Below, in pieces: positions 1-35,199 of a stretch of 64,000 bases of DNA. Each line of letters starts with the position of its first letter. Within the stretch, counting starts at the first letter, position 1. Source of the DNA: Eukaryota sp. TZLM1-RC (lineage: Eukaryota; Protista; Metamonada: BaSk clade). The position numbers and the translations under genes are program-made. The notes beneath the pieces were generated by a model. It saw only the letters and a list, made by a program, of their open reading frames with translations, had not been told where the DNA came from and made no database searches. The stretch spans positions 6,043,784-6,107,783 of the forward strand of contig JAUPSS010000004.1 in NCBI GenBank assembly GCA_040285825.1, in the 5' to 3' direction.

Positions 1-532
1 CAATAAAAATAATCATTTACAAAATTAAATCATGGCTTTAGCTCGATTAGATTAGATTTGTAAATCGAGTATTACAGTATTAGCAAAAGACCACTTTGTT
101 AACGAAAATTACTGTACCAGAAAATACTGTGACCATCAAACGTCAGGAATAAAGGTTGTCCTGTATCAGGTTTCATATAAGAAGTTCATAACTGATTAAC
201 AATGATGAAATTGGATTCGAGAACGCCATAGGAAGATAATCAATTTCTTGTTGTTATCAGTTGAAAGATTACTTAGAAGTCGTTCAAGCAATTGCCTGAC
301 TCAAAAAATAGTGTTAATAAATACAAGTTGTGTGATTCTGTCAGGATTAGATATTTCAATATCATATTCTAAAGATCTATAGTGTTCTTAGATTTGAAGT
401 TAAATGTACCTACATGATTAAATTTCCTTCTTGGAGTTTATATACAATATAAATGAAACTCAGAATGTTACATTAATCTCATAAAATAAAGATCATTAGA
501 GATTCTGCATAAGCATGCAACAAGTGGATGCT

Positions 533-1250
533 TTAATGACACGCCCAACCAAAACTAAACTCAGTGACACAATTGGGACACTGTTGCAATTGACCACTGC
601 CACTATCACCAAACATGAAGTCTACATTACATTCACTTTCGATGTTAAATATGTGCCGTTTTTGAGTGCCACATATCTTACACTTTGAATACTCTGGACC
701 CTGAACAAAAGCTGGAGCACTACAGTCAGTTGAAATAAAATCCATACCCCAAAAGTTTATCCATTACCTGAGGGTAAGCTAAATCTTCTTCTGATTCAAC
801 AATAGTTTCGAGTTCATCGGGATATAGGATGTCCCAGAATTCTGCGTCTTCCCATGCACGATAGTCTGCGAAAGGTTTCCAATCAATTATGAACTTCTCC
901 TTATAGCCTTCTGAAATAACGACATCATGACTAACATGTTCAGATCTTGGGACAAAATATCTACAGAGTTGACCTTCACCATCGTGCTCATACGAACCCA
1001 GGTCACGATCATAGAATAGCTGAATGTAACCAGTGTCCAAATTGAGTACTTTTTTGGCTTCGTCTGGTAAAGTATCAACGTGTAGCTGAAGCATAAGAGG
1101 ATATTTTGGAGGAGGATGGTCTTCATCTGCAAAGGCCTTTCCACCAAACTTGCTCTGAGATGGACTTTTTCCAATAACTGGTTCATAGCCCGTAACTCGA
1201 AGTTCAGGGTAATCGTAGCCAGCTTCTTTCAGATTGTCTTTTATTGTCAT
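533..1250 (-). CDS. DUF1963/YwqG-family protein, 2 exons (intron 720-747)
   Basis: ORFs 726..1250 and 533..745 join through a 28-bp GTATGG...CTGACTGTAG intron to give SKFGG...LMLQL...IQLFYD...DKLLGAPAFVQGPEYSKCKICG...FMFGDSGSGQLQQCPNC...FGWACH, the YwqG/DUF1963 pattern. Confidence 0.75.
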
Positions 1251-1507
1251 AAAATATACAGATAGTGAAAATGGTGTTCTCCATAATTTTCATCTCAGTT
1301 TCGTTTTCATCACGTTATTTCAAAATTACAATCACAGTAAAAACTCTCCAATGGAAATCGGTGAACCACATTCTGTTTCAACTGAGAAGAGGTTCAATAG
1401 CCGAGATTTTATTGATATTTGCATTATCCAGACAATCTGGAACATTTTCAAATCATTGATTTCTCGTTAAAATTTTTTTATCAAATTTTATTACCAAACA
1501 TGTTATA

Positions 1508-1608
1508 TTTATTGAATTTGCACACTTAATTAAATTAACTCATAACTAATGGGACGACTATCATTGAACCAAGATTTCCTCTACAAAATCTTGATCTGCT
1601 TGCTGCTT
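1508..1608 (-). mobile_element. ~100-bp 3'-terminal fragment of CRE-like non-LTR family B
   Basis: Reverse complement matches 16895-16990; flanked by ACATGTTATA (1498-1507) / ACATGATATA (1609-1618), a probable TSD. Confidence 0.8.
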
Positions 1609-1890
1609 ACATGATATACTAGTTCAAAATTTAAAAGTGTATTCAGATATTTGAACCCGTTCTAAATCAACTATTTCAGACCCTTCTGTAAAAGCATGAA
1701 ATATTCTGCAAGTGTTTTTCTTACGAGCGCTTGTCCACATTTTCTTTTTCTCGAGTTCTTTTGTACATTAAAAGTCAATTTCCATGAGAAGAGAGTGCAA
1801 TGTTCTTTGGTACCAATACCCTCCAGTGTTGGCACTTATTCATTTTGTTCAGATCATTGAAAAGATTACAAATATAATTCAGATATTCAA

Positions 1891-2515
1891 TTGTATACCA
1901 ACAATGGTGGGAAGATTGTTATCCCAGATAGTTTAAAAAAGCAGACTTTAACTATCATTCATGGACTTGCAAATGTTGGTCATCCTAGGGTGACGACTAG
2001 CGTAAGGAAATTACTCGATAGTGATTACTTTTGGCCAAACATGCGCAAAGACATGATCAATCATATTAAGAGATGTCCAGCATGTCAAAAGACGGCCCAT
2101 GTGCCTAAAAATGTCATTGAATCATCTGGCTCTCTTTGGGCAGATCGTCCTGTTGCTCGAATAAACGCAGACACTATTGGACCATTACAACATGATGATA
2201 ATGGATTAAAGTATTTAATAGTTTTTGTAGATTCGTTCACTAGATGCACGATCATTTGCCCTGCAAAGGAATTGAATTCAGTGGAGCGACCATCCACCTC
2301 CTATGGAGTGTAGTATCAATTTTTGGTATCCCACTGTTGATTCATAGGTATTGAATTTGCAAATGCCATATTCAAAGGGTTATGCGATTTATTAAACATT
2401 GAAGTAAGTCGTCCACTAACTGGTTTTGTACAAAGCAATGGGTTAGTAGAAATACGTCTCAGAGACATTTTACAAAGTGTGAGAAAGATTTTGGTGGACC
2501 CTGACGATTATAGCA
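1891..2515 (+). pseudogene. Ty3/gypsy integrase fragment (H2C2 zinc domain + degraded DDE core)
   Basis: H..GHP...YFWPNM...CPACQK, ADTIGPL, LIVFVDSFTR; after a frameshift SIFGIP...EFAN...QSNGLVE. Confidence 0.85.
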
Positions 2516-2620
2516 AAAAACCTGACAAAAACCTGATTTTGGCATGGTAAAGTAAATTGGCACTGATAATCAGCTCAATTGTTTTGAGGACATCCCAAGG
2601 ATAATCCCATTGAAATTTCT

Positions 2621-2902
2621 CTAATTACTTTTATTTGCCAATGTGGGTGCTTTAGAAGCTGCCATGATTTTTGATAATGAATTAGGAGTGATACTATTGG
2701 GGTAAGTCAGTGGGTTCTTAGGAGAAAGGCTAAGAGCGAATGTGGTTAGCGTACTATTGTTAGTTAGGAACGACACAATTGTAAGTGTAAGGGAGTCAGA
2801 AATGTTGTTTCCGCTGATGTTGAGGGAAGTTAAGGAGACAGGACAAGACATGATCGTAGATGTATTATGGTCACGAAGGATGTTGTCACTGAGAGATATC
2901 AC
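2621..2902 (-). pseudogene. Leucine-rich repeat (RI-like) fragment
   Basis: ISLSDNIL, LTSLNISGNNISD, FLTNNSTLTTF; no clear start. Confidence 0.45.
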
Positions 2903-3302
2903 ACCACTGTGTGGATAAGTGTTTTTCCATGTATTGCGTACCTGTACGCGTATTGTGATCTTGCTGCTTTAACTATCATTTGATCGTGATATCATATAGT
3001 GACAGAACTAAAGTAAGCTTAACGTCTATCAAGATTGCATGAATTGCTCAAAAGCCAGAAGTGCGTTTTGATAGAAATTCACAATAACTTATTGAAGGAA
3101 ACTACCAACTTTTATTCCATCGCAAACTCTTTTCCACTTTCTGTGTTCCTTATTGCGCATTATGCTTCACAACTTTGATTTTCTAATTCAATGATTTTGC
3201 ATTCAGTCTATTCTTTATGTAACAATTGGATCCGGCAATATGTTCACCAACACTTTTTTTAGATGTTGATAATTCTTTAATTGTATTAGATGTATGTGGA
3301 TG

Positions 3303-3388
3303 AAGATTTTGTAGAGTAAATCTTGGTCAATGAATTTCGTCCCATTAGTTATGAGTTTAATTTGTTAAGTTCACAAGATCAATAAATC
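3303..3388 (+). mobile_element. Short diverged 3'-terminal fragment of non-LTR family B
   Basis: AAGATTTTGTAGAG..AAATCTTGG...CGTCCCATTAGTTATGA...TCAATAAA matches the 3' end of the 15907-16992 element. Confidence 0.7.
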
Positions 3389-3743
3389 AAAAACAACAAT
3401 TTATGTGTCTCATATACCTTCTTCACAAATGATTTTTGCGATCCATACATACAGATGGATTGTTGTCTTCAGTGTTTCTGAGTTTTGTGTGAAGTAGTCA
3501 AAGCATCAAGAGCTCTGACCTTGCTGTCTTCACTTGCTGCCACTATGAGGGAAGATATATCTACCCCAGAAAAAAGGTGATCAGTTTTTAGAGGCATTAA
3601 TTAATTTTGATCAGAATCAGAGGTGAATGGAATGGGAATGGTGATTCACCAAACTTGCAATTCACAGTTGAACATCTTTGGTGGAGTGTCTTCTTCCATC
3701 AGCCCACTTCTAATCGTCCTTTACACCTTGCTATAACCAATAA

Positions 3744-5589: not shown

Positions 5590-5839
5590 AGGTTTTTTAT
5601 TGTTACTAGTTTTTATGTCTGTTCTGATGAGATTTTGTGAAAATATTCTATTTGGTGGAGTGGACTGAGGAATACTTGGAAACCATTCTTTAGTAACTTT
5701 TTTTTGTTTCATCATTAATTCTCTTTATTTTTTCCCTTTCGTTAATTTCTATTAGCTGCTCTCATGTAGTTTACTTCATTATTCACCGTTTTCAGTGAGT
5801 TCAATGGTAAAACATTATTTTATTTTGTAAAACATTAGG

Positions 5840-5968
5840 TTTGACAACAGAGGTTCCAAAGAAAGATTCATCTCTATGAGACTTACACATACAATATAAT
5901 TGGTCTCTTACAGCAACGTGAACATTGCTTCTAAAAGTAATAAAATGTTTACAATTTAACAAATGAGT
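5840..5968 (-). mobile_element. Internal fragment (Zn knuckle/HDAVRD region) of CRE-like family A, inverted, at the left edge of the array
   Basis: Translates THLLNCKHFITFRSNVHVAVRDQLYCMCKSHR; near-identical to ~31057-31185. Confidence 0.85.
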
Positions 5969-6028
5969 CATTGTTTTGCCAATTTTGTAACTAAAACTGT
6001 TTAAGTTCTCATCTGATACTTTACAAAT

Positions 6029-13528: not shown

Positions 13529-14626
13529 TGATGCCGTTAGGCAGAAATACCAAAGAAGTAAAGAGAGAAAAGAGGTTTATTAATAGAAATACTTGTTTTT
13601 GAACAAGTGCCACGTCATCATGTAAATTCCTCATCTGTTTAGCAAGATAGTTAATCAGTAACAACAACACTACTTCTTCCCATTTTCTTTCAACAGTTTC
13701 GTGAACCATTTAGCATAATGAAGAAAGGGGATTTGTGAGATACTGAGGCACGTGGCGTAAATGATTGACTTCGTGCTTAACTTTTGAGGGGCAATCACGA
13801 GCTAGATGACCTTTCTGGTGACATTTGAAACATGTCCCTTCAGTCAAATTGCGAGACCTATGGGATGAACGAGACTTCATACCAGCTTGACGCACAGAGT
13901 CGGTATTTTCAGAAACAGTCTTTGAAGACCTGTTCCAAGAAGCTACTCGCGTGCAATCAAGTAGTTCATCCTCTGCGGTATTTACCAATGTAGGAAAATC
14001 GGGGAATACCTCATCCCGAATTCGAGAAATCAGAGATTTCTGCAGTCCTAATGGAAGAATACCCTTTGCGAATCTGATCATGAAGGCTGAGTCAGGCAGT
14101 TTCAGTCCGGAAGCCCTGCTTTTCGCCTGAAGAAAACGTCTCAGGTAGCAGGACATACGTTCACGGACGTCGCCCTTACGGACATCAACCTTCAACTCAG
14201 ACATCACCAAGTTGAATTCCTCGTACGAGGAAAACGAGGTGGAGGATCTTAAATGATCCAGAAACACCTCATCGGATGAATCGACCCCAGGTCTTGTGAG
14301 AACCAATGATTCTAACAAGAAGGGGTCAACGAGGAGCCTTGCTGGAACAAGGTCCTTTTTCGGTGTAACAGAAGAGTACACCTTCCACTGTTGTAGGAAC
14401 AACAGAACATCATCCACTTCCATAGAAGCAAGGGACGGATGTAGTACGTGTGTAGATTTCATCTGCAATGAGGGCCAATAATTATTGATGCCGTTAGGCA
14501 GAAATACCAAAGAAGTAAAGAGAGAAAAGAGGTTTATTAATAGAAATACTTGTTTTTGAACAAGTGCCACGTCATCATGTAAATTCCTCATCTGTTTAGC
14601 AAGATAGTTAATCAGTAACAACAACA
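13529..14626 (-). mobile_element. Non-autonomous Gag-only LTR retrotransposon inserted in a 5S spacer
   Basis: 141-bp LTRs 13529-13669 and 14486-14626, identical by eye, TG...CA ends; 4-bp TSD TAAT (13525-28, 14627-30); purine tract AAAGAAAATGGGAAGAAGTAG before the 3' LTR; no pol. Confidence 0.93.
13710..14462 (-). CDS. gag: Gag-like protein with CCHC zinc knuckle (~250 aa)
   Basis: First ATG after the 5' LTR at 14462; CFKCHQKGHLARDC knuckle; helical capsid-like region. Confidence 0.8.
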   Translation of the reverse strand: MKSTHVLHPSLASMEVDDVLLFLQQWKVYSSVTPKKDLVPARLLVDPFLLESLVLTRPGVDSSDEVFLDHLRSSTSFSSYEEFNLVMSELKVDVRKGDVRERMSCYLRRFLQAKSRASGLKLPDSAFMIRFAKGILPLGLQKSLISRIRDEVFPDFPTLVNTAEDELLDCTRVASWNRSSKTVSENTDSVRQAGMKSRSSHRSRNLTEGTCFKCHQKGHLARDCPSKVKHEVNHLRHVPQYLTNPLSSLC

Positions 14627-15657: not shown

Positions 15658-15906
15658 TTTTAACAATATGTTTGTTAAAAAATTGTTTCTCAACAAATTG
15701 TCAATTGATCAAGTTTATTCAACTGGGAATTCATTTTTTAAACATTATCATTGTTTTTAATTGTAATGATAAAAATTAATGAAGAGAATGAAATACAATA
15801 TCATCCTTTTTAACTAAAATTGTTTTTAAATGGTAATGGTAGCTACAGTTTCCCAACAACATTTTTGCCAATTTTGTAACTAAAAATGTTTAAATTCTCA
15901 TCTGAT

Positions 15907-16992
15907 TCTTCCACTGTTTTTGCATTAAATGAAGAAATTTCAAGAATTGATGTAGAAAAATGGGGTCGATGTTTTCCCCAATCATTCAATGGCAATATTC
16001 CAGAAAAAAATGTTTTAAATTTGAAGTACACTCTTCGAACATTACAGAAAAGATTGACTGGAATGTATGAAAAAGATCTTTATAATAATATTTGCAGCTC
16101 GGCTGTTTTAAATCAAGATCTTCACTCATTGTTATTGGAAAAGGGTGTTTGTGAAAACAAGGTGTCAGATTCTTCAATTTTTGTAACCATTGTACCACGA
16201 AGATTTGGATTGTGTGCTACTAATGAAGCATTTGTAACAAAAATGAGATTATATTTGAACATCCCCATTAACCAATTATTATCAAAAGAAAAAAATGTAT
16301 TTGTTCGAATTCACCTCAACTCACTTTGCGCCATGCTCTAAATTGCTCTAAATTGATAACTTATCGTTCTTCATTACATGATGCTGTTAGAGACACTGTT
16401 TTCAATATGGCACAAACTGCAAGGATATCGTGTATCAAAGAGCCCCTGCTGAAAGAAACACTTTCTCTGAATAATTTTTGGTTCTGATGATAGAGGTGAT
16501 GTATACTGTGATTGGATTGACAATTCTGAAGCTATTGTTGACTTTGTCTCATGTAATGTTGCAAACGATACTTTGGTTCACAGAAGAAAACTTAATCCTG
16601 TGGCTGCTCTGGATTTTTAAAGCAAAAAGAAAAAAACATAGAAAAATATGATAAAGAAATTGAAGATGCAAATATCGATAGAAATACACAGCTGGTTTTT
16701 ATTGCTTTTCCATTTTCGATAAATGGAAGATTATCAGTTGAAGCAGAAACTTTTTTGGATGACTTCCAAAAAATGGTGAAAGAAAAAACAATGAAAAGAT
16801 TTGATATTTTTTTATGGCGTTCACGGATTCAATTTGCCATTATTAATAGATTACCGCGGTTTTTCAATCGAATTAGAGAAGCTTTAGCTAGACAGCAAGC
16901 AAATCAAGATTTTGTAGAGGAAATCTTGGTTTAATGATAGTCGTCCCATTAGTTATGATTTAATTTAATCAAGTGTGCAAATTCAATAAATT
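15907..16992 (+). mobile_element. 5'-truncated CRE-like RLE non-LTR retrotransposon (family B)
   Basis: Encodes, with homopolymer frameshifts, CIC...HALNC, RSSLHDAVRD, EPLL, RGDV, VDF, KHRKY, FPFSINGRL; 14-bp TSD AATTCTCATCTGAT (15893-15906, 16993-17006). Confidence 0.92.
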
Positions 16993-17017
16993 AATTCTCA
17001 TCTGATACTTTACAAAT

Positions 17018-22063: not shown

Positions 22064-22204
22064 TTTTAACAATATGTTTGTTAAAAAATTGTTTCTCAAC
22101 AAATTGTCAATTGATCAAGTTTATTCAACTTGGAATTCATTTTTTAAATATGATCATTGTTTTTAATTGTAATGATAAAAATTAATGAAGAGAATGAAAT
22201 ACAA

Positions 22205-22250
22205 CAGTAGTTGGGTGGGAGACCACCAGCGAACACTGGGTGCTGCATCC
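22205..22250 (+). pseudogene. 5'-truncated 5S rRNA (3' 46 nt only)
   Basis: Spacer ...AATACAACA joined directly to 5S nt 74 onward (CAGTAGTTGGG...); ~190-bp deletion. Confidence 0.9.
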
Positions 22251-28581: not shown

Positions 28582-28700
28582 GGATGCGGCCATACTTGGT
28601 CTATAGCACCGGATCCCATTCCGAATTCCGAAGTTAAGCGGCCACAGGCCTGGTCAGTAGTTGGGTGGGAGACCACCAGCGAACACTGGGTGCTGCATCC
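28582..28700 (+). rRNA. 5S: 5S rRNA
   Basis: array copy. Confidence 0.95.
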
Positions 28701-28785
28701 TTTTAACAATAGGCTTGTTAAAAAATTGTTTTTCAACAAATTGTCAATTGATCAAGTTTATTCAACTGGGAATTCATTTTTAAAT

Positions 28786-31686
28786 ATGATCAATGTTTTT
28801 GTGAAAGGTGCTGAAAATAATGTTTCTGACGATCAACATTTGAATGCTTCTAGTGCTCATTCTTCTTCCCCTTCTGAAAACAGTAATTTTTGTTGTCCAT
28901 TTTGCAAAAAAGATGTTACAGATTCCAGAAATGGTCGAAAACTTCTGTTTTGTGCCAATTGTAAAGCCGTTGATACCGTAAGACCCCCGATCCAGATCCC
29001 AGTAGAAATTAGCCCCGCCAGCACAATTCCCTTCTCAATGGAAATGAGAAATTTTACTTCTGAATTGAAAAATAATAAGTGGAATATTTCATCCTTCTGG
29101 AAATATTTTGCTCGAAAAAACAAAAATTGTTTTAAAAAAAATTTTGGAAATAGAAAAATTGTAAAATCAAAAATTTGCCGAAAATTGTGCTTACGTGGTT
29201 GTTATGGTGCCGCAAAGCAGTCCTTGTTTTCCTCTTCTTTGGCTGATGCAAACTCTGATACCCTTGAAAAACTTCAAAAGTTGCATCCTCAAGAAAATTT
29301 CAAGTGCAGCAAGCCTGATGTGTGTCCTTTTTGGATTGAAAATCCTATTACTGCAATTGAAGTTCTTAAAGCTATTCAAAAATTACCAAAGGGGAAAGCA
29401 GCAGGCCCATCTGGAATTTCTTTTGATCTCTTAAAAATAGCGTGTTCCAGTGCTCCCGAAATTGCTGATGATCTAGCCCATTATTTTCAACAATTAATTG
29501 TTTTGAAAATTAATCCTCCATTTGAATTACTCGCTGCACGTCTGATTGCTTTAGTAAAGCCTGGAAACGGCATCAAACCTGATGGAATACGCCCAATTGC
29601 TGTTGGTGAATCTCTTTCTCGTTTGCTGGCATCAACTGTCTTCGATCGTGTCAAAGACAAAGCTTCTACATTTTTGAATCCTCATCAATTTGGAATCAAA
29701 ACAATTGATGGTGCTTCTGTTGCTGCTATTGCCTCTGATACCTTTTTTAATGCAGAGAAAAATAATTTTATTTTTTATCTCGACTTTAAAAATGCTTTTA
29801 ATTCTGTAAAACGAGAAGCAATTTTTGAAGTTATTAAATCTGATTTTCCTGAGCTATCGAGTTTTTTCTACCATTTTTATGGGAAAGAATCAGATTTAGT
29901 TTTTAATTCATTTGCTCTTAAATCATCTTCTGGAGTGAAGCAGGGAGATCCTTTAGGCCCATTATTGTTTTGTTTAGCTATTCACAAAACTTTAAATATC
30001 ATTAAGCAAAAATACCCATCTTTAAAAATAGTTGCTTATATGGATGATATATCCTTGATTGGTTCATTTGATTTACTAGAATTGGTTGCTCAAGAAATTG
30101 CCGATTCATATGAAAATATTGGGCTTCATCTTAATGCGAGCAAATGCCTTCTGATTGGCTTTTCTGCTCAAGATCTCGTGATAAACGATTCTATTATCCC
30201 TTTTACTAATTATAGTAGTGATGCTTTTAAGTTCCTTGATTGTTGGTTAGGAAACGTGCCTCAAATTCAGAATGAATTGCAAGTTATTTTGGAAAAAATG
30301 AAAATTGAACTTGATTCAATTTCTTCTTTAGATATAGAAAAGCATATTAAATTTTTCATGCTTGAACTTTGCTACACTGGGAGAATAACCCACATTTTGA
30401 GATCTTGTGCTCCTTCCATAGCATTAGATTTTTGTCGTTCATTTAATTCATTGAGAACAGAATTTTTTGCTGATTTATTGGATGTAGAACCAGGAATGTT
30501 GAAAAATCACTTATTTTCTTCAGCAAATTTCGGTGGTATTGGATTTACTAAATCTTCAATTTTGTGTCAATCAGCATTCTTGGGTGGTGGCAAAAATTTT
30601 ATTTATGAATTTTCTCGTAGATTTCCTGATAATTCTCATCTGTTAGTTCCCAATTGCAGTCCCTATTTGTATGAGTTATCATGTGAACTTGAAAAATGGC
30701 CGCCACAAATTTGGACCAAATGTTTTCCTCAATCAATTCAAGAAATTCCAAACCGATCTCTTTTTAATTTACAGTTTTGCTGTAAAAAGCTTCAACAAAA
30801 ATTGTCAAAGATTTTTGAAAGCCTGGATTTTGATGTTAGACTTGGCTTGGCCAAGAAAAAGAATCCCGCTTTTGCAAATCTTTTACAAGATATGTGTGAC
30901 AGTACTTCTTCTGCCTTAGTAACAACAATTCCACAAGTTTATGGTACTCTCTTAACCGATTCTGCTTGGACTCTGAATATGAGATTTCGTTCCTTTATCT
31001 GGCCTGATAATTTACCTCATAATTTAATTTGTAAATGTTCTCGAGAAATTACAACTACTCATTTGTTAAATTGTAAACATTTTATTACTTTTAGAAGCAA
31101 GGTTCATGATGCTGTAAGAGACCAGTTATATTGTATGTGTAAATCTCATAGAATTGAATCCTTCTTGGAACCTCTGTTGTCAAATCTGTTTGATGCTGAA
31201 GATGATTTTCATAAGAATAATAGAGGTGATGTTATATTACCTGGATTAGATGGAAGTTTCATTTTATTGGATGTAATGTCTGTTGATCCTTGTAATGCCT
31301 CAAATGAAAGGCTTGTTAATTCTGAAATTCATAATCCTCTTTCTAATGCTGAAAATTTCAAACTCAAAAAATACAATGAACCTTTGTCCAAATTGGCCAA
31401 TCTACAGCATGCAAAATACAATTTGTATCCATTTGTATTTTCCCTTTTTGGTTCACTTGCACCAACTGCTTTACGTTTTTTGGATGATTTTGAATTGATT
31501 GTAAAGAGAAGAACTGGGAGAAATTTCAACAGATTGTTTTGGCAAAATAGAATTGTGTTTTCTATTTTTAAGGGGATGTTGAAGATGGTTTCTGATGCTT
31601 TGCTGTCTCTTGGTTCTCAATATGAGAGAGTTGCATCTAGTGTTTTTGTTTTGGGAGAGATGGATTTTTTAGATGTTGATTTATAG
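28786..31686 (+). CDS. Reverse transcriptase + CCHC knuckle + restriction-like endonuclease, N-terminal C4 zinc motif
   Basis: CPFC...CANC; KAAGPSG, RPIAVGE, QFG, LDFKNAFNS, GVKQGDPLGP, YMDD, GLHLNASK, GGIG; CKC..HLLNC; HDAVRD; RGD..LDV..KLKKY. The first in-frame ATG (28786) lies in the 5S spacer. Confidence 0.93.
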   Translation: MINVFVKGAENNVSDDQHLNASSAHSSSPSENSNFCCPFCKKDVTDSRNGRKLLFCANCKAVDTVRPPIQIPVEISPASTIPFSMEMRNFTSELKNNKWNISSFWKYFARKNKNCFKKNFGNRKIVKSKICRKLCLRGCYGAAKQSLFSSSLADANSDTLEKLQKLHPQENFKCSKPDVCPFWIENPITAIEVLKAIQKLPKGKAAGPSGISFDLLKIACSSAPEIADDLAHYFQQLIVLKINPPFELLAARLIALVKPGNGIKPDGIRPIAVGESLSRLLASTVFDRVKDKASTFLNPHQFGIKTIDGASVAAIASDTFFNAEKNNFIFYLDFKNAFNSVKREAIFEVIKSDFPELSSFFYHFYGKESDLVFNSFALKSSSGVKQGDPLGPLLFCLAIHKTLNIIKQKYPSLKIVAYMDDISLIGSFDLLELVAQEIADSYENIGLHLNASKCLLIGFSAQDLVINDSIIPFTNYSSDAFKFLDCWLGNVPQIQNELQVILEKMKIELDSISSLDIEKHIKFFMLELCYTGRITHILRSCAPSIALDFCRSFNSLRTEFFADLLDVEPGMLKNHLFSSANFGGIGFTKSSILCQSAFLGGGKNFIYEFSRRFPDNSHLLVPNCSPYLYELSCELEKWPPQIWTKCFPQSIQEIPNRSLFNLQFCCKKLQQKLSKIFESLDFDVRLGLAKKKNPAFANLLQDMCDSTSSALVTTIPQVYGTLLTDSAWTLNMRFRSFIWPDNLPHNLICKCSREITTTHLLNCKHFITFRSKVHDAVRDQLYCMCKSHRIESFLEPLLSNLFDAEDDFHKNNRGDVILPGLDGSFILLDVMSVDPCNASNERLVNSEIHNPLSNAENFKLKKYNEPLSKLANLQHAKYNLYPFVFSLFGSLAPTALRFLDDFELIVKRRTGRNFNRLFWQNRIVFSIFKGMLKMVSDALLSLGSQYERVASSVFVLGEMDFLDVDL

Positions 31687-31720
31687 GTTTTGAATAAAAT
31701 TAAAATACTTGAAAAAAAAA
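28801..31720 (+). mobile_element. CRE-like RT-RLE non-LTR retrotransposon family A, copy 1
   Basis: Single ORF, short 3' UTR and A-tail (31712-31720); TSD TGTTTTT (28794-28800) / TGTGTTT (31721-31727); normal spacer resumes after it. Confidence 0.95.
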
Positions 31721-31886
31721 TGTGTTTAATTGTAATGATAAAAATTAATGAAGAGAATGAAATACAACATCATCCTTTTTAACTAAAATTGTTTTTAAAT
31801 GGTAATGGTAGCTACAGTTTCCCAACAACATTTTTGCCAATTTTGTAACTAAAAATGTTTAAATTCTCATCTGATACTTTACTAAT

Positions 31887-32004
31887 GGATGCGGCCATAC
31901 TTGGTCTATAGCACCGGATCCCATTCCGAATTCCGAAGTTAAGCGGCCACAGGCCTGGTCAGTAGTTGGGTGGAGACCACCAGCGAACACTGGGTGCTGC
32001 ATCC
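31887..32004 (+). rRNA. 5S: 5S rRNA
   Basis: single unit between the two family A copies; 1-nt deletion; terminator TTTT>TATT. Confidence 0.88.
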
Positions 32005-32104
32005 TATTAACAATAGGTTTGTTAAAAAATTGTTTTTCAACAAATTGTCAATTGATCAAGTTTATTCAACTGGGAATTCATTTTTAAATATGATCAATGT
32101 TTTT

Positions 32105-35033
32105 GTGAAAGGTGCTGAAAATAATGTTTCTGACGATCAACATTTGAATGCTTCTAGTGCTCATTCTTCTTCCCCTTCTGAAAACAGTAATTTTTGTTGT
32201 CCATTTTGCAAAAAAGATGTTACAGATTCCAGAAATGGTCGAAAACTTCTGTTTTGTGCCAATTGTAAAGCCGTTGATACCGTAAGACCCCCGATCCAGA
32301 TCCCAGTAGAAATTAGCCCCGCCAGCACAATTCCCTTCTCAATGGAAATGAGAAATTTTACTTCTGAATTGAAAAATAATAAGTGGAATATTTCATTCTT
32401 CTGGAAATATTTTTGCTCGAAAAAAACAAAAAAATTGTTTTTAAAAAAAATTTTGGAAGTAGAAAAATTGTAAAAATCAAAAATTTGCCGAAAATTGTGC
32501 TTACGTGGTCGTTATGGTGCCGCAAAGCAGTCCTTGTTTTCCTCTTCTTTGGCTGATGCAAACTCTGATACCCTTGAAAAACTTCAAAAGTTGCATCCTC
32601 AAGAAAACTTCAAGTGCAGCAAGCCTGATGTGTGTCCTTTTTGGATTGAAAATCCTATTACTGCAATTGAAGTTCTTAAAGCTATTCAAAAAAATTACCA
32701 AAGGGGAAAGCAGCAGGCCCATCTGGAATTTCTTTTTGATCTCTTAAAAATAGCGTGTTCCAGTGCTCCCGAAATTGCTGATGATCTAGCCCATTATTTT
32801 TCAACAATTAATTGTTTTGAAAATTAATCCTCCATTTGAATTACTCGCTGCACGTCTGATTGCTTTAGTAAAGCCTGGAAACGGCATCAAACCTGATGGA
32901 ATACGCCCAATTGCTGTTGGTGAATCTCTTTCTCGTTTGCTGGCATCAATTGTCTTCGATCGTGTCAAACACAAAGCTTCTACATTTTTGAATCCTCATC
33001 AATTTGGAATCAAAACAATTGATGGTGCTTCTGTTGCTGCTATTGCCTCTGATACCTTTTTTAATGCAGAGAAAAATAATTTTATTTTTTATCTCGACTT
33101 TAAAAATGCTTTTAATTCTGTAAAACGAGAAGCAATTTTTGAAGTTATTAAATCTGATTTTCCTGAGCTATCGAGTTTTTTCTACCATTTTTATGGGAAA
33201 GAATCAGATTTAGTTTTTAATTCATTTGCTCTTAAATCATCTTCTGGAGTGAAGCAGGGAGATCCTTTAGGCCCATTATTTTTTTGTTTAGCTATTCACA
33301 AAACTTTAAATATCATTAAGCAAAAATACCCATCTTTAAAAATAGTTGCTTATATGGATGATATATCCTTGATTGGTTCATTTGATTTACTAGAATTGGT
33401 TGCTCAAGAAATTGCCGATTCATATGAAAATATTGGGCTTCATCTTAATGCGAGCAAATGCCTTCTGATTGGCTTTTCTGCTCAAGATCTCGTGATAAAC
33501 GATTCTATTATCCCTTTTACTAATTATAGTAGTGATGCTTTTAAGTTCCTTGGTTGTTGGTTAGGAAACGTGCCTCAAATTCAGAATGAATTGCAAGTTA
33601 TTTTGGAAAAAATGAAAATTGAACTTGATTCAATTTCTTCTTTAGATATAGAAAAGCATATTAAATTTTTCATGCTTAAACTTTGCTACACTGGGAGAAT
33701 AACCCACATTTTGAGATCTTGTGCTCCTTTCATAGCATTAGATTTTTGTCGTTCATTTAATTCATTGAGAACAGAATTTTTTGCTGATTTATTGGATGTA
33801 GAACCAGGAATGTTGAAAAATCACTTATTTTCTTCAGCAAATTTCGGTGGTATTGGATTTACTAAATCTTCAATTTTGTGTCAATCAGCATTCTTGGGTG
33901 GTGGCAAAAATTTTATTTATGAATTTTCTCGTAGATTTCCTGATAATTCTCATCTGTTAGTTCCCAATTGCAGTCCCTATTTGTATGAGTCATCATGTGA
34001 ACTTGAAAAATGGCCGCCACAAATTTGGACCAAATGTTTTCCTCAATCAATTCAAGAAATTCCAAACCGATCTCTTTTTAATTTACAGTTTTGCTGTAAA
34101 AAGCTTCAACAAAAATTGTCAAAGATTTTTGAAAGCCTGGATTTTGATGTTAGACTTGGCTTGGCCAAGAAAAAGAATCCCGCTTTTGCAAATCTTTTAC
34201 AAGATATGTGTGACAGTACTTCTTCTGCCTTAGTAACAACAATTCCACAAGTTTATGGTACTCTCTTAACCGATTCTGCTTGGACTCTGAATATGAGATT
34301 TCGTTCCTTTATCTGGCCTGATAATTTACCTCATAATTTAATTTGTAAATGTTCTCGAGAAATTACAACTACTCATTTGTTAAATTGTAAACATTTTATT
34401 ACTTTTAGAAGCAAGGTTCATGATGCTGTAAGAGACCAGTTATATTGTATGTGTAAATCTCATAGAATTGAATCCTTCTTGGAACCTCTGTTGTCAAATC
34501 TGTTTGATGCTGAAGATGATTTTCATAAGAATAATAGAGGTGATGTTATATTACCTGGATTAGATGGAAGTTTCATTTTAATGGATGTAATGTCTGTTGA
34601 TCCTTGTAATGCCTCAAATGAAAGGCTTGTTAATTCTGAAATTCATAATCCTCTTTCTAATGCTGAAAATTTCAAACTCAAAAAATACAATGAACCTTTG
34701 TCCAAATTGGCCAGTCTACAGCATGCAAAATACAATTTGTATCCATTTGTATTTTCCCTTTTTGGTTCACTTGCACCAACTGCTTTACGTTTTTTGGATG
34801 ATTTTGAATTGATTGTAAAGAGAAGAACTGGGAGAAATTTCAACAGATTGTTTTGGCAAAATAGAATTGTGTTTTCTATTTTTAAGGGGATGTTGAAGAT
34901 GGTTTCTGATGCTTTGCTGTCTCTTGGTTCTCACTATGAGAGAGTTGCATCTAGTGTTTTTGTTTTGGGAGAGCTGGATTTTTTAGATGTTGATTTATAG
35001 GTTTTGAATAAAATTAAAATACTTGAAAAAAAA
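32105..35033 (+). mobile_element. CRE-like RT-RLE non-LTR retrotransposon family A, copy 2
   Basis: Same 5' junction (CAATGTTTTT|GTGAAAGG) as copy 1, A-tail, perfect TGTTTTT TSD (32098-32104, 35034-35040); frameshifts only at homopolymers 32400-32800. Confidence 0.95.
32817..35000 (+). CDS. RT-RLE ORF of family A copy 2 (5' part split by homopolymer frameshifts)
   Basis: Same RT and RLE motifs as copy 1; keeps FLG in RT motif 7. Confidence 0.85.
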   Translation: MKINPPFELLAARLIALVKPGNGIKPDGIRPIAVGESLSRLLASIVFDRVKHKASTFLNPHQFGIKTIDGASVAAIASDTFFNAEKNNFIFYLDFKNAFNSVKREAIFEVIKSDFPELSSFFYHFYGKESDLVFNSFALKSSSGVKQGDPLGPLFFCLAIHKTLNIIKQKYPSLKIVAYMDDISLIGSFDLLELVAQEIADSYENIGLHLNASKCLLIGFSAQDLVINDSIIPFTNYSSDAFKFLGCWLGNVPQIQNELQVILEKMKIELDSISSLDIEKHIKFFMLKLCYTGRITHILRSCAPFIALDFCRSFNSLRTEFFADLLDVEPGMLKNHLFSSANFGGIGFTKSSILCQSAFLGGGKNFIYEFSRRFPDNSHLLVPNCSPYLYESSCELEKWPPQIWTKCFPQSIQEIPNRSLFNLQFCCKKLQQKLSKIFESLDFDVRLGLAKKKNPAFANLLQDMCDSTSSALVTTIPQVYGTLLTDSAWTLNMRFRSFIWPDNLPHNLICKCSREITTTHLLNCKHFITFRSKVHDAVRDQLYCMCKSHRIESFLEPLLSNLFDAEDDFHKNNRGDVILPGLDGSFILMDVMSVDPCNASNERLVNSEIHNPLSNAENFKLKKYNEPLSKLASLQHAKYNLYPFVFSLFGSLAPTALRFLDDFELIVKRRTGRNFNRLFWQNRIVFSIFKGMLKMVSDALLSLGSHYERVASSVFVLGELDFLDVDL

Positions 35034-35199
35034 TGTTTTTAATTGTAATGATAAAAATTAATGAAGAGAATGAAATACAACATCATCCTTTTTAACTAAA
35101 ATTGTTTTTAAATGGTAATGGTAGCTACAGTTTCCCAACAACATTTTTGCCAATTTTGTAACTAAAAATGTTTAAATTCTCATCCGATACTTTACTAGT

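Follow-up and report, generated by a model that had tools for sequence, protein, structure and literature searches.

The paired LINEs in the 5S rRNA gene array of Skoliomonas litria very probably go back to one insertion of a family A element into a 5S spacer, later duplicated along with its unit, and family A very probably has no sequence-specific target. Both LINEs, copy 1 at 28801–31720 and copy 2 at 32105–35033 of the window (the whole stretch of 64,000 nucleotides analysed), are near-identical elements with a reverse transcriptase (RT) and a restriction-like endonuclease (RLE). A single truncated insertion of a scattered family that was copied with a 5S unit would be an ordinary insertion rather than the work of a 5S-targeting element. 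This removes a possible new RLE retrotransposon that targets 5S DNA, a result of little weight beyond annotation.

The 5S array in the window comprises 65 genes (Rfam RF00001) between 6029 and 38726, with about 380 bp per unit. Consecutive units are broken at an identical spacer position by the two insertions, each about 2.92 kb. The 5S gene of the insertion-receiving unit is at 28582–28701 (Rfam RF00001, 102 bits) and, like all the features described for the two filled units, is on the plus strand. Copy 1 ends in a 9-A tail (31712–31720) and is flanked by a left target site duplication (TSD), TGTTTTT, at 28794–28800, and by a right TSD with one later change, TGTGTTT, at 31721–31727. Copy 2 ends in an 8-A tail (35026–35033) and is flanked by TGTTTTT on both sides, at 32098–32104 and 35034–35040. 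The earlier note’s description of two insertions of about 2.9 kb, located at one spacer site in neighbouring 5S units, is thus confirmed in its coordinates, with an A-tail and a 7-bp duplication for each. The left TSD was defined by comparison with the empty site, GATCATTGTTTTT followed by AATTG, which was matched 53 times in an ungapped scan of the array. The 5' junction, in which ...ATGATCAATGTTTTT is joined to GTGAAAGG, is common to copies 1 and 2, and at the 3' end both read ...AATAAAATTAAAATACTTG(A)8–9; next come TGTGTTT in copy 1 and TGTTTTT in copy 2, with AATTG after these.

The filled units also share a T>A change at 28793, immediately 5' of the TSD. Matches to ATGATCAATGTTTTT were at 28786 and 32090 only, and the resulting CAATG flank was present in none of the 53 empty sites from the ungapped scan and in none of the other units compared; the change is, as had been reported, confined to the two filled units. 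The spacer variant AATAGG, upstream of both copies, was considered as further evidence for duplication and was dropped as a common array haplotype.

The two-copy structure is read from the assembly, and a single inserted copy might have been turned into two by a long-read assembler that wrote the repeat block twice. The assembly was made from 41x Nanopore data with Illumina polishing (PMC11316075), assemblers err on tandem arrays, and the cluster of small insertions in copy 2 resembles unpolished sequence. Copy-1-private alleles, moreover, are absent from short-read contigs, though contigs drop rare variants. However, 16 substitutions separate the two copies over 2,908 aligned bases (0.55%), and the 5S gene between them (31887–32005, Rfam, 95.4 bits), inside the duplicated 3,304-bp block, carries variants of its own, namely a 1-nt deletion and, past its end, CCTATT. 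Because one locus written twice would not yield such substitutions and variants, an assembly artefact is very unlikely.

The 2.9-kb 5S copies are a truncated form of a 3.48-kb element. Full-length family A members, of about 3.48 kb, are found at L003:3914-7393, L008:5918-9386, L009:5917-9397 and L001:3917-7393, the first of which is the reference for the positions given here. In these members a leader of 87 bp precedes the ATG, which is at reference position 88, about 480 bp 5' of the start of the 5S copies. Copy 1 is 96.8% identical to the reference from position 569 to position 3477, and copies 1 and 2 begin at the same base, reference position 567–569, with 2 nt of microhomology (TT). Since full-length members start about 567 bp further 5', both 5S copies are 5'-truncated at one identical nucleotide, and they are not the whole 2.9-kb elements that they had been taken for. 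The truncation has removed the 5' UTR, the true ATG and about 160 codons at the N-terminus, those of a CCHC knuckle among them. In three public runs, compared as assembled contigs and loose ends, full-length family A sequence continues upstream of 28799, and the depth of contigs along the 4,101-letter query climbs toward the 3' end. A truncation hot spot was also considered, as the start of one other copy, L007:5587, falls no more than about 10 bp from that of the 5S copies. That copy is from a different sublineage and is flanked by a duplication of its own; the near-coincidence, with an estimated chance of about 0.1 among about 22 copies, was set aside.

Copies 1 and 2 are sister sequences, with support of 0.996–1.0. 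The changes since their split, 15 non-synonymous to 1 synonymous, fit neutrality (p = 0.22). The FLG>FLD change seen earlier in copy 1 proved to be a substitution at 30239 that is private to that copy. Among the 62 changes common to both copies, 37 are synonymous and 25 non-synonymous, and this synonymous majority indicates that most of them arose in an active source lineage. Nearest to that lineage are the L001 copies, which carry 28 of 64 diagnostic alleles and are full length and outside 5S DNA. Private to the 5S pair are 32 alleles, at 16:16 still with a synonymous excess, and the pair also has its own 3' tail variant, ..AAAATACTTG(A)n; the immediate source thus lies outside the sample. 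Among annotated proteins, none exceeded about 97% identity to copy 1 across a long stretch, and the immediate source copy was thus not among them.

The possibility was weighed that the pair represents a 5S-spacer-specific sublineage, a short form that starts at about 567, uses the spacer ATG and hit one site twice independently. Site and orientation are identical in both copies, the open reading frame (ORF) is in frame with the spacer ATG, the 32 private alleles show signs of purifying selection and come with a distinct 3' tail, and RLE LINE clades are mostly target-specific (PMC4640811). Against this, the copies have in common one junction nucleotide and a unique flank mutation, their divergence since the split is neutral, at least 53 sites in the same array are empty and a third copy is absent, and the closest relatives are full-length elements outside 5S DNA. 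With one junction nucleotide, a unique flank variant and sister sequences, the 5S site gave no sign of independent hits, and we consider such a sublineage extremely unlikely. That the source sublineage outside the sample is itself a 5S-spacer-resident short form using the spacer ATG, marked by the 32 private alleles under purifying selection and by the AAAATACTTG(A)n tail, is likewise improbable in the extreme; if it were so, the same-site pair would represent an RLE LINE that genuinely targets the spacer of a Pol III gene.

The sample of family A consists of nine other loci on nine contigs, 114 kb, picked via annotated proteins. Repeats were masked ahead of the published annotation (PMC11316075), so that a protein-based sample of nine loci could miss a sublineage resident in some other 5S array. 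The sample contains 27 further family A 3' ends, all of which end in GAATAAAATTAAA..(A)n, and at the nine loci none of these 27 ends outside the window is in or near 5S DNA. The 5' ends at the sampled loci are scattered from position 1 to position 3337, and the duplications of independent insertions are 7–17 bp long and unrelated in sequence. Across the 27 3' ends, family A thus has the signature of target-primed reverse transcription (TPRT): the 3' end is fixed, the extent of 5' truncation varies and the target is duplicated. Eleven reconstructed targets have no motif in common at either nick position, no one target accounts for a majority of the 3' junctions in the nine-locus sample, and no sampled family A copy is at the 28S site used by R2. 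Every sampled copy is bordered by other LINEs, by unique DNA or by 5S spacer, and most copies lie within other LINEs. At the sampled loci, family A has no sequence-specific target.

The earlier note had proposed a 5S-associated, CRE-like family, and had named as evidence against it a single 5' junction in 5S DNA with most other copies at unrelated sites. This is the pattern found: both 5S copies share one 5' junction, the other 27 sampled 3' ends, on nine contigs, are not in 5S DNA, and all other sampled copies are at unrelated sites. The proposal is accordingly given up in favour of the caveat that accompanied it, a single insertion that was duplicated together with its 5S unit and has drifted since; this caveat is borne out by the junction and the flank variant that the copies have in common, by their sister placement and by the neutral change. 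Identical truncation points elsewhere are confined to local segmental duplications (positions 1466 and 2951, each twice, at L004, and 3270 twice at L006). Three insertions at reference 1107–1126 were considered as a hot spot inside family A and were judged not significant post hoc.

A regional preference without sequence specificity would have family A and the array’s other retroelements drawn to Pol III-transcribed or 5S chromatin, and three different retroelement insertions in one 32-kb array are in keeping with this. But the one family A event in 5S DNA is set against 27 sampled 3' ends elsewhere, mostly inside other LINEs, and tolerated insertions build up in any spacer array without targeting. 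Such a preference is unlikely.

Copy 1 contains a single open frame of 966 codons plus stop (28786–31686, by translation and Pfam), whose ATG comes from the 5S spacer and not from the element; the spacer ATG (ATGATCATT...) is also found in empty units. In copy 2, seven insertions at 32410–32797 disrupt the frame. Because Nanopore homopolymer errors can break frames, frame intactness was not used as evidence for activity. Every protein motif that had been listed for the copies is present in the translation, which carries CxxC...CxxC, RPIAVGE, QGDPL, YMDD, CCHC and RGD..D..KLKKY, and Pfam gives an RVT_1 match with E = 1.7e-21. A phmmer search of a PDB set, in which R2 represents the RLE LINEs and L1 is the other LINE, gave matches to the RT regions of R2 and L1 ORF2p, and the ESM Atlas gave generic RVT_1 clusters only. 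Residues C749, C751, H759, C763 and D829 are invariant in 34 homologues, and at least 90% of them keep R813, E856 and K859. The predicted structure (pLDDT 84.6) matches R2 proteins nearly end to end in a whole-length comparison, C-terminal region included. A LINE RT is followed by a C-terminal CCHC and then a PD-(D/E)xK endonuclease, without an APE domain, and on this modelled architecture the 5S copies are assigned to the RLE-type, single-ORF LINEs.

The history of the pair can be pictured as follows. A dispersed, high-copy family A, whose single ORF encodes an N-terminal CCHC knuckle, a C4 zinc finger, the RT, a CCHC and a C-terminal PD-(D/E)xK restriction-like endonuclease, would have inserted once into a 5S spacer by TPRT. 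Reverse transcription may have halted, or jumped to the target, when about 567 bp remained to the 5' end of the RNA, which would have given a dead-on-arrival copy without promoter, start codon and the first 160 or so codons, the truncated frame meeting the spacer ATG by chance. Unequal crossing-over or a similar recombination within the array would then have duplicated a 3,304-bp block made up of the element and one 5S unit, and both copies, presumably inactive, would have decayed neutrally since. The pair would thus offer a dated example of 5S unit duplication, a 3.3-kb block whose copies are now 0.55% apart.

Family A resembles R2 (R2Tg, R2Bm and the Platysternon R2) in its single ORF, which combines zinc-binding motifs at the N-terminus with a LINE RT and a C-terminal CCHC and PD-(D/E)xK, and in its TPRT insertion signature; the family A model aligns to R2 proteins with TM scores of 0.57–0.62 over 950–1030 columns, with a sequence identity of only about 13–17%. 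Unlike R2, family A is neither at the 28S R2 site nor at any fixed site, its duplications being 7–17 bp, and it ends in a poly(A) tail and carries a gag-like CCHC knuckle at the N-terminus. The CRE, SLACS and CZAR elements, too, are RLE LINEs of protists in which a single ORF is followed by an A-rich tail, the likeness being drawn from these features and not from an RT tree. They are specific for spliced-leader genes, whereas family A is without target specificity. Mutsu is an APE-type element of the Tx1 group that is truly specific for 5S genes, whereas family A is RLE-type and probably owes its presence in 5S DNA to a single event. A passage in PMC5340908 places Mutsu, a zebrafish LINE, within 5S rDNA units, and the element is entered in a table of PMC10946416. 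By insertion behaviour, the best match to family A is with HERO, which includes many non-specific families (PMC4640811), and with other RLE LINEs that are not target-specific, although the host of family A, unlike that of HERO, is a metamonad protist. Family A is an undescribed but conventional LINE family of a free-living metamonad that was sequenced recently; it is non-specific and piles up in other LINEs. As another non-specific RLE LINE family, it is relevant to the view that site specificity was universal among early RLE elements (PMC4640811).

The same 32-kb array also holds a second RLE LINE at 15906–16996 and a gag-only LTR element at 13529–14626. At the left edge of the array there is an older family-A-like fragment (5837–5974, minus strand), which meets the spacer at a different position.

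The window holds 65 5S rRNA genes on the + strand (Rfam; 6029-38726), spaced at about 380 bp, and this spacing is interrupted by two gaps of about 3.3 kb, after the genes at 28582 and 31887. Junction reading placed one element in each gap, both on the + strand: copy 1 spans 28801-31720, copy 2 32105-35033. Both copies are directly preceded by ...ATGATCAATGTTTTT, start with GTGAAAGGTGCTG and end in ...GAATAAAATTAAAATACTTG plus nine (copy 1) or eight (copy 2) A residues. TGTGTTT follows the tail of copy 1 and TGTTTTT that of copy 2, and AATTGTAATG comes next in both. Without an insertion, this spacer position (the empty site) reads GATCATTGTTTTT|AATTG and had 53 matches in an ungapped scan; comparison with the filled units identifies a 7-bp duplication, TGTTTTT, around each copy. 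An earlier note had described these junctions, two copies and protein motifs correctly, as re-reading confirmed, and had raised the idea of a 5S-associated CRE-like family. The feature is real, and its explanation is ordinary: copies 1 and 2 are one 5'-truncated insertion of a dispersed restriction-like endonuclease (RLE) LINE, family A, later duplicated with its 5S unit.

The open frame of copy 1 begins at an ATG (28786), ends at a stop (31684-31686) and comprises 966 codons. Its translation contains RVT_1 (Pfam) and all the motifs listed in the earlier note. Copy 2 differs from copy 1 by 16 substitutions and several small, frame-breaking insertions. Alignment with 33 homologues showed C749, C751, H759, C763 and D829 to be invariant and R813, E856 and K859 to be kept in at least 90% of the sequences; these residues belong to the CCHC and PD-(D/E)xK endonuclease motifs. 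With this alignment as input, AlphaFold2 gave a confident model of the copy 1 protein (pLDDT 84.6, pTM 0.81), and the model's top structural matches were solved R2 proteins (950-1030 columns, TM 0.57-0.62), with LINE-1 ORF2p ranking behind them. Given the conserved residues and the R2-like predicted fold, the family A element is an RLE-type LINE. The proteins closest to copy 1 are all from Eukaryota sp. TZLM1-RC itself (GCA_040285825.1), whose assembly was made from 41x Nanopore data with Illumina polishing and whose retrotransposons were not analysed in the genome paper (PMC11316075). The copy 1 frame is the longest among the sampled copies, the others reaching at most 718 codons, and its greater length could be due to homopolymer assembly errors, so ORF intactness carries no weight in this reading.

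For comparison, nine loci on nine contigs (114 kb, given L numbers here) were reached by way of annotated proteins whose identity to copy 1 was 90-97%; what follows on dispersal refers to this sample of protein-linked loci. Full-length copies (L003:3914-7393, along which reference positions are numbered, L008:5918-9386, L009:5917-9397 and L001:3917-7393) extend about 567 bp upstream of GTGAAAGG. This extra region opens with an 87-bp leader starting (A)TTTTTTTTTCTCCCTCCC, followed by an ATG at reference position 88, and the approximately 160 codons after this true ATG include a zinc knuckle, CSICGISGHNSRTC, which Pfam recognizes weakly. In the 5S copies, the junction with the target falls at reference position 567-569, where a 2-nt microhomology (TT) is present, and contigs from three public runs carry the full-length sequence TTCTCAAATGTTCTGTTCCAGCTGTTGCCG upstream of 28799. 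Copies 1 and 2 are 5'-truncated. Because empty units read ATGATCATTGTTTTTAATTG..., the ATG at 28786 is spacer sequence, and we read the in-frame start as a coincidence, an accident of the truncated copy's landing place. Further upstream, no stop interrupts the copy 1 frame across the spacer and the adjoining 3' end of the 5S gene, giving an ORF at 28690-31686, and some empty units have ACG at the ATG position.

The nine loci contained 27 further family A 3' ends, all of the form GAATAAAATTAAA(T/A)-rich(A)n, and 5' ends ranging from reference positions 1 to 3337. No similarity to the 5S unit was found at any of the nine loci (114 kb compared). Ten independent insertions with both junctions visible had target duplications of 7-17 bp with unrelated sequences: GGTGGAAGTCAC, ATTTGAATTACT, ACTAATGAAGCATT, TTTTAAGGGG, AACCCTTATCTCAGCTA, ATTGTGCCAGA, AAAGTATGCT, AACATTTTGAG and AAATGCTTCATTAG, and about GATTTCC for an insertion in L009. 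Other LINE copies were the targets of most sampled insertions. Family A is dispersed, without site specificity. With these 27 3' ends at non-5S loci, and with both 5S copies coming from a single insertion, the proposed 5S-targeting CRE-like family is not supported. In the assembled contigs from public runs, depth on the window sequence climbs toward the 3' end, as expected for a family made mostly of 5'-truncated copies. An older (about 92%) family-A-like fragment of the CCHC/endonuclease region (5837-5974, minus strand) borders the 5S array on its left and joins the first unit's spacer near unit position 322, a different point from the copies' site. RLE LINE clades are mostly target-specific, and the HERO clade holds many non-specific families (PMC4640811); in its behaviour without a fixed target, family A is like the non-specific RLE LINEs. 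Among the LINEs tabulated in a recent review, only Mutsu of zebrafish is 5S-specific (PMC10946416; PMC5340908), and assorted LINE and LTR insertions are reported from 5S spacers of fish and plants (PMC10946416).

The earlier note had itself cautioned that a single insertion might have been duplicated with its 5S unit, and the common truncation point, a flanking T>A change and the sister relationship of the copies bear this out. The truncation nucleotide is identical in copies 1 and 2; elsewhere, the same truncation point occurs twice only in local segmental duplications with common flanks (in L004, two copies at 1466 and two at 2951; in L006, two at 3270). Only the two filled units carry the T>A change, which sits immediately next to the 5' side of the duplication (28793 in one, 32097 in the other). 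An AATAGG variant farther upstream was dropped as evidence of duplication, being a common array haplotype that is uninformative either way. In trees of the sampled copies, copies 1 and 2 are sisters (support 0.996-1.0), at a distance of 0.55% from each other versus 2.2-3.2% from other sampled copies. After their split, 15 of the 16 substitutions were non-synonymous, in agreement with a neutral expectation of 79% (p = 0.22). The changes that both copies share relative to the family consensus number 62, 37 synonymous and 25 non-synonymous, and this synonymous excess places the origin of most of them in an active source lineage. Of the 64 diagnostic alleles of the 5S pair, 28 also occur in L001:3917, a full-length non-5S copy, and 32 are private to the pair, with the synonymous excess still present. 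The immediate source of the pair lies outside the sample, but its nearest relatives are conventional full-length elements at non-5S sites. We propose that family A, a non-specific RLE LINE, entered a 5S spacer by chance, and that unequal exchange within the array would then have doubled the element together with one 5S unit. The copy-to-copy distance of 3,304 bp, one element plus one 5S unit, fits such an exchange; the two-copy structure, as assembled, rests on the published assembly and the 16 substitutions between copies.

Elsewhere in the array, at 22180-22210, a partial unit duplication joins spacer ...GAATGAAATACAACA directly to mid-5S gene sequence (GTAGTTGGGTGGG...) at about 22206, indicating that irregular recombination occurs within the array. 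Public-run contigs have other neighbours around the 5S gene, TCATTTAATGTTTACATTTGCAACTATCGG before it (28573) and GATATTTGGTTGCCTGACAATTATTGTTTT after it (28704), which shows that those samples contain a second 5S spacer type. A 1.1-kb element at 13529-14626, in another 5S unit and 9 bp downstream of the family A site, has direct terminal repeats of about 145 bp, a minus-strand gag-like ORF with a zinc knuckle (Pfam zf-CCHC) and a 4-bp duplication, TAAT. A second RLE LINE, family B, is present at 15906-16996, just upstream of a 5S gene, as a 3' portion left by 5' truncation, and it has a perfect duplication of 14 bp, AATTCTCATCTGAT. The family B tail is not made of A (...GATAGTCGTCCCATTAGTTATGATTTAATTTAATCAAGTGTGCAAATTCAATAAATT); it also terminates a family A body in L001 and recurs as a short inverted insert inside the same copy (L001:8785-8935, L001:11296-11357), so families A and B seem to exchange 3' tails. 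At L001:2273-11295, family A copies form a head-to-tail stack, and after every copy comes one and the same segment (about 285 bp) of another LINE's endonuclease-coding region; at L003:7394-7682 the same junction is present and the host element simply runs on. These arrangements may stem from unequal crossing-over, from segmental duplication or from 3' read-through. Inside family A copies, reference positions 1107-1126 (around AATCCTATTACTGCAATTGAAG) were hit three separate times within 20 bp, by two family A insertions and one family B fragment (L004:6678, L006:5828, L001:8784-8936); the cluster might mark a weak hot spot, but as a post hoc observation it was judged not significant. To the right of the array, 41901-63796 carries long intron-free host ORFs, encoding a class-V aminotransferase-like protein, a Cid1-type nucleotidyltransferase, an Hsp70-VWA fusion and an Hsp70-H-lectin fusion.
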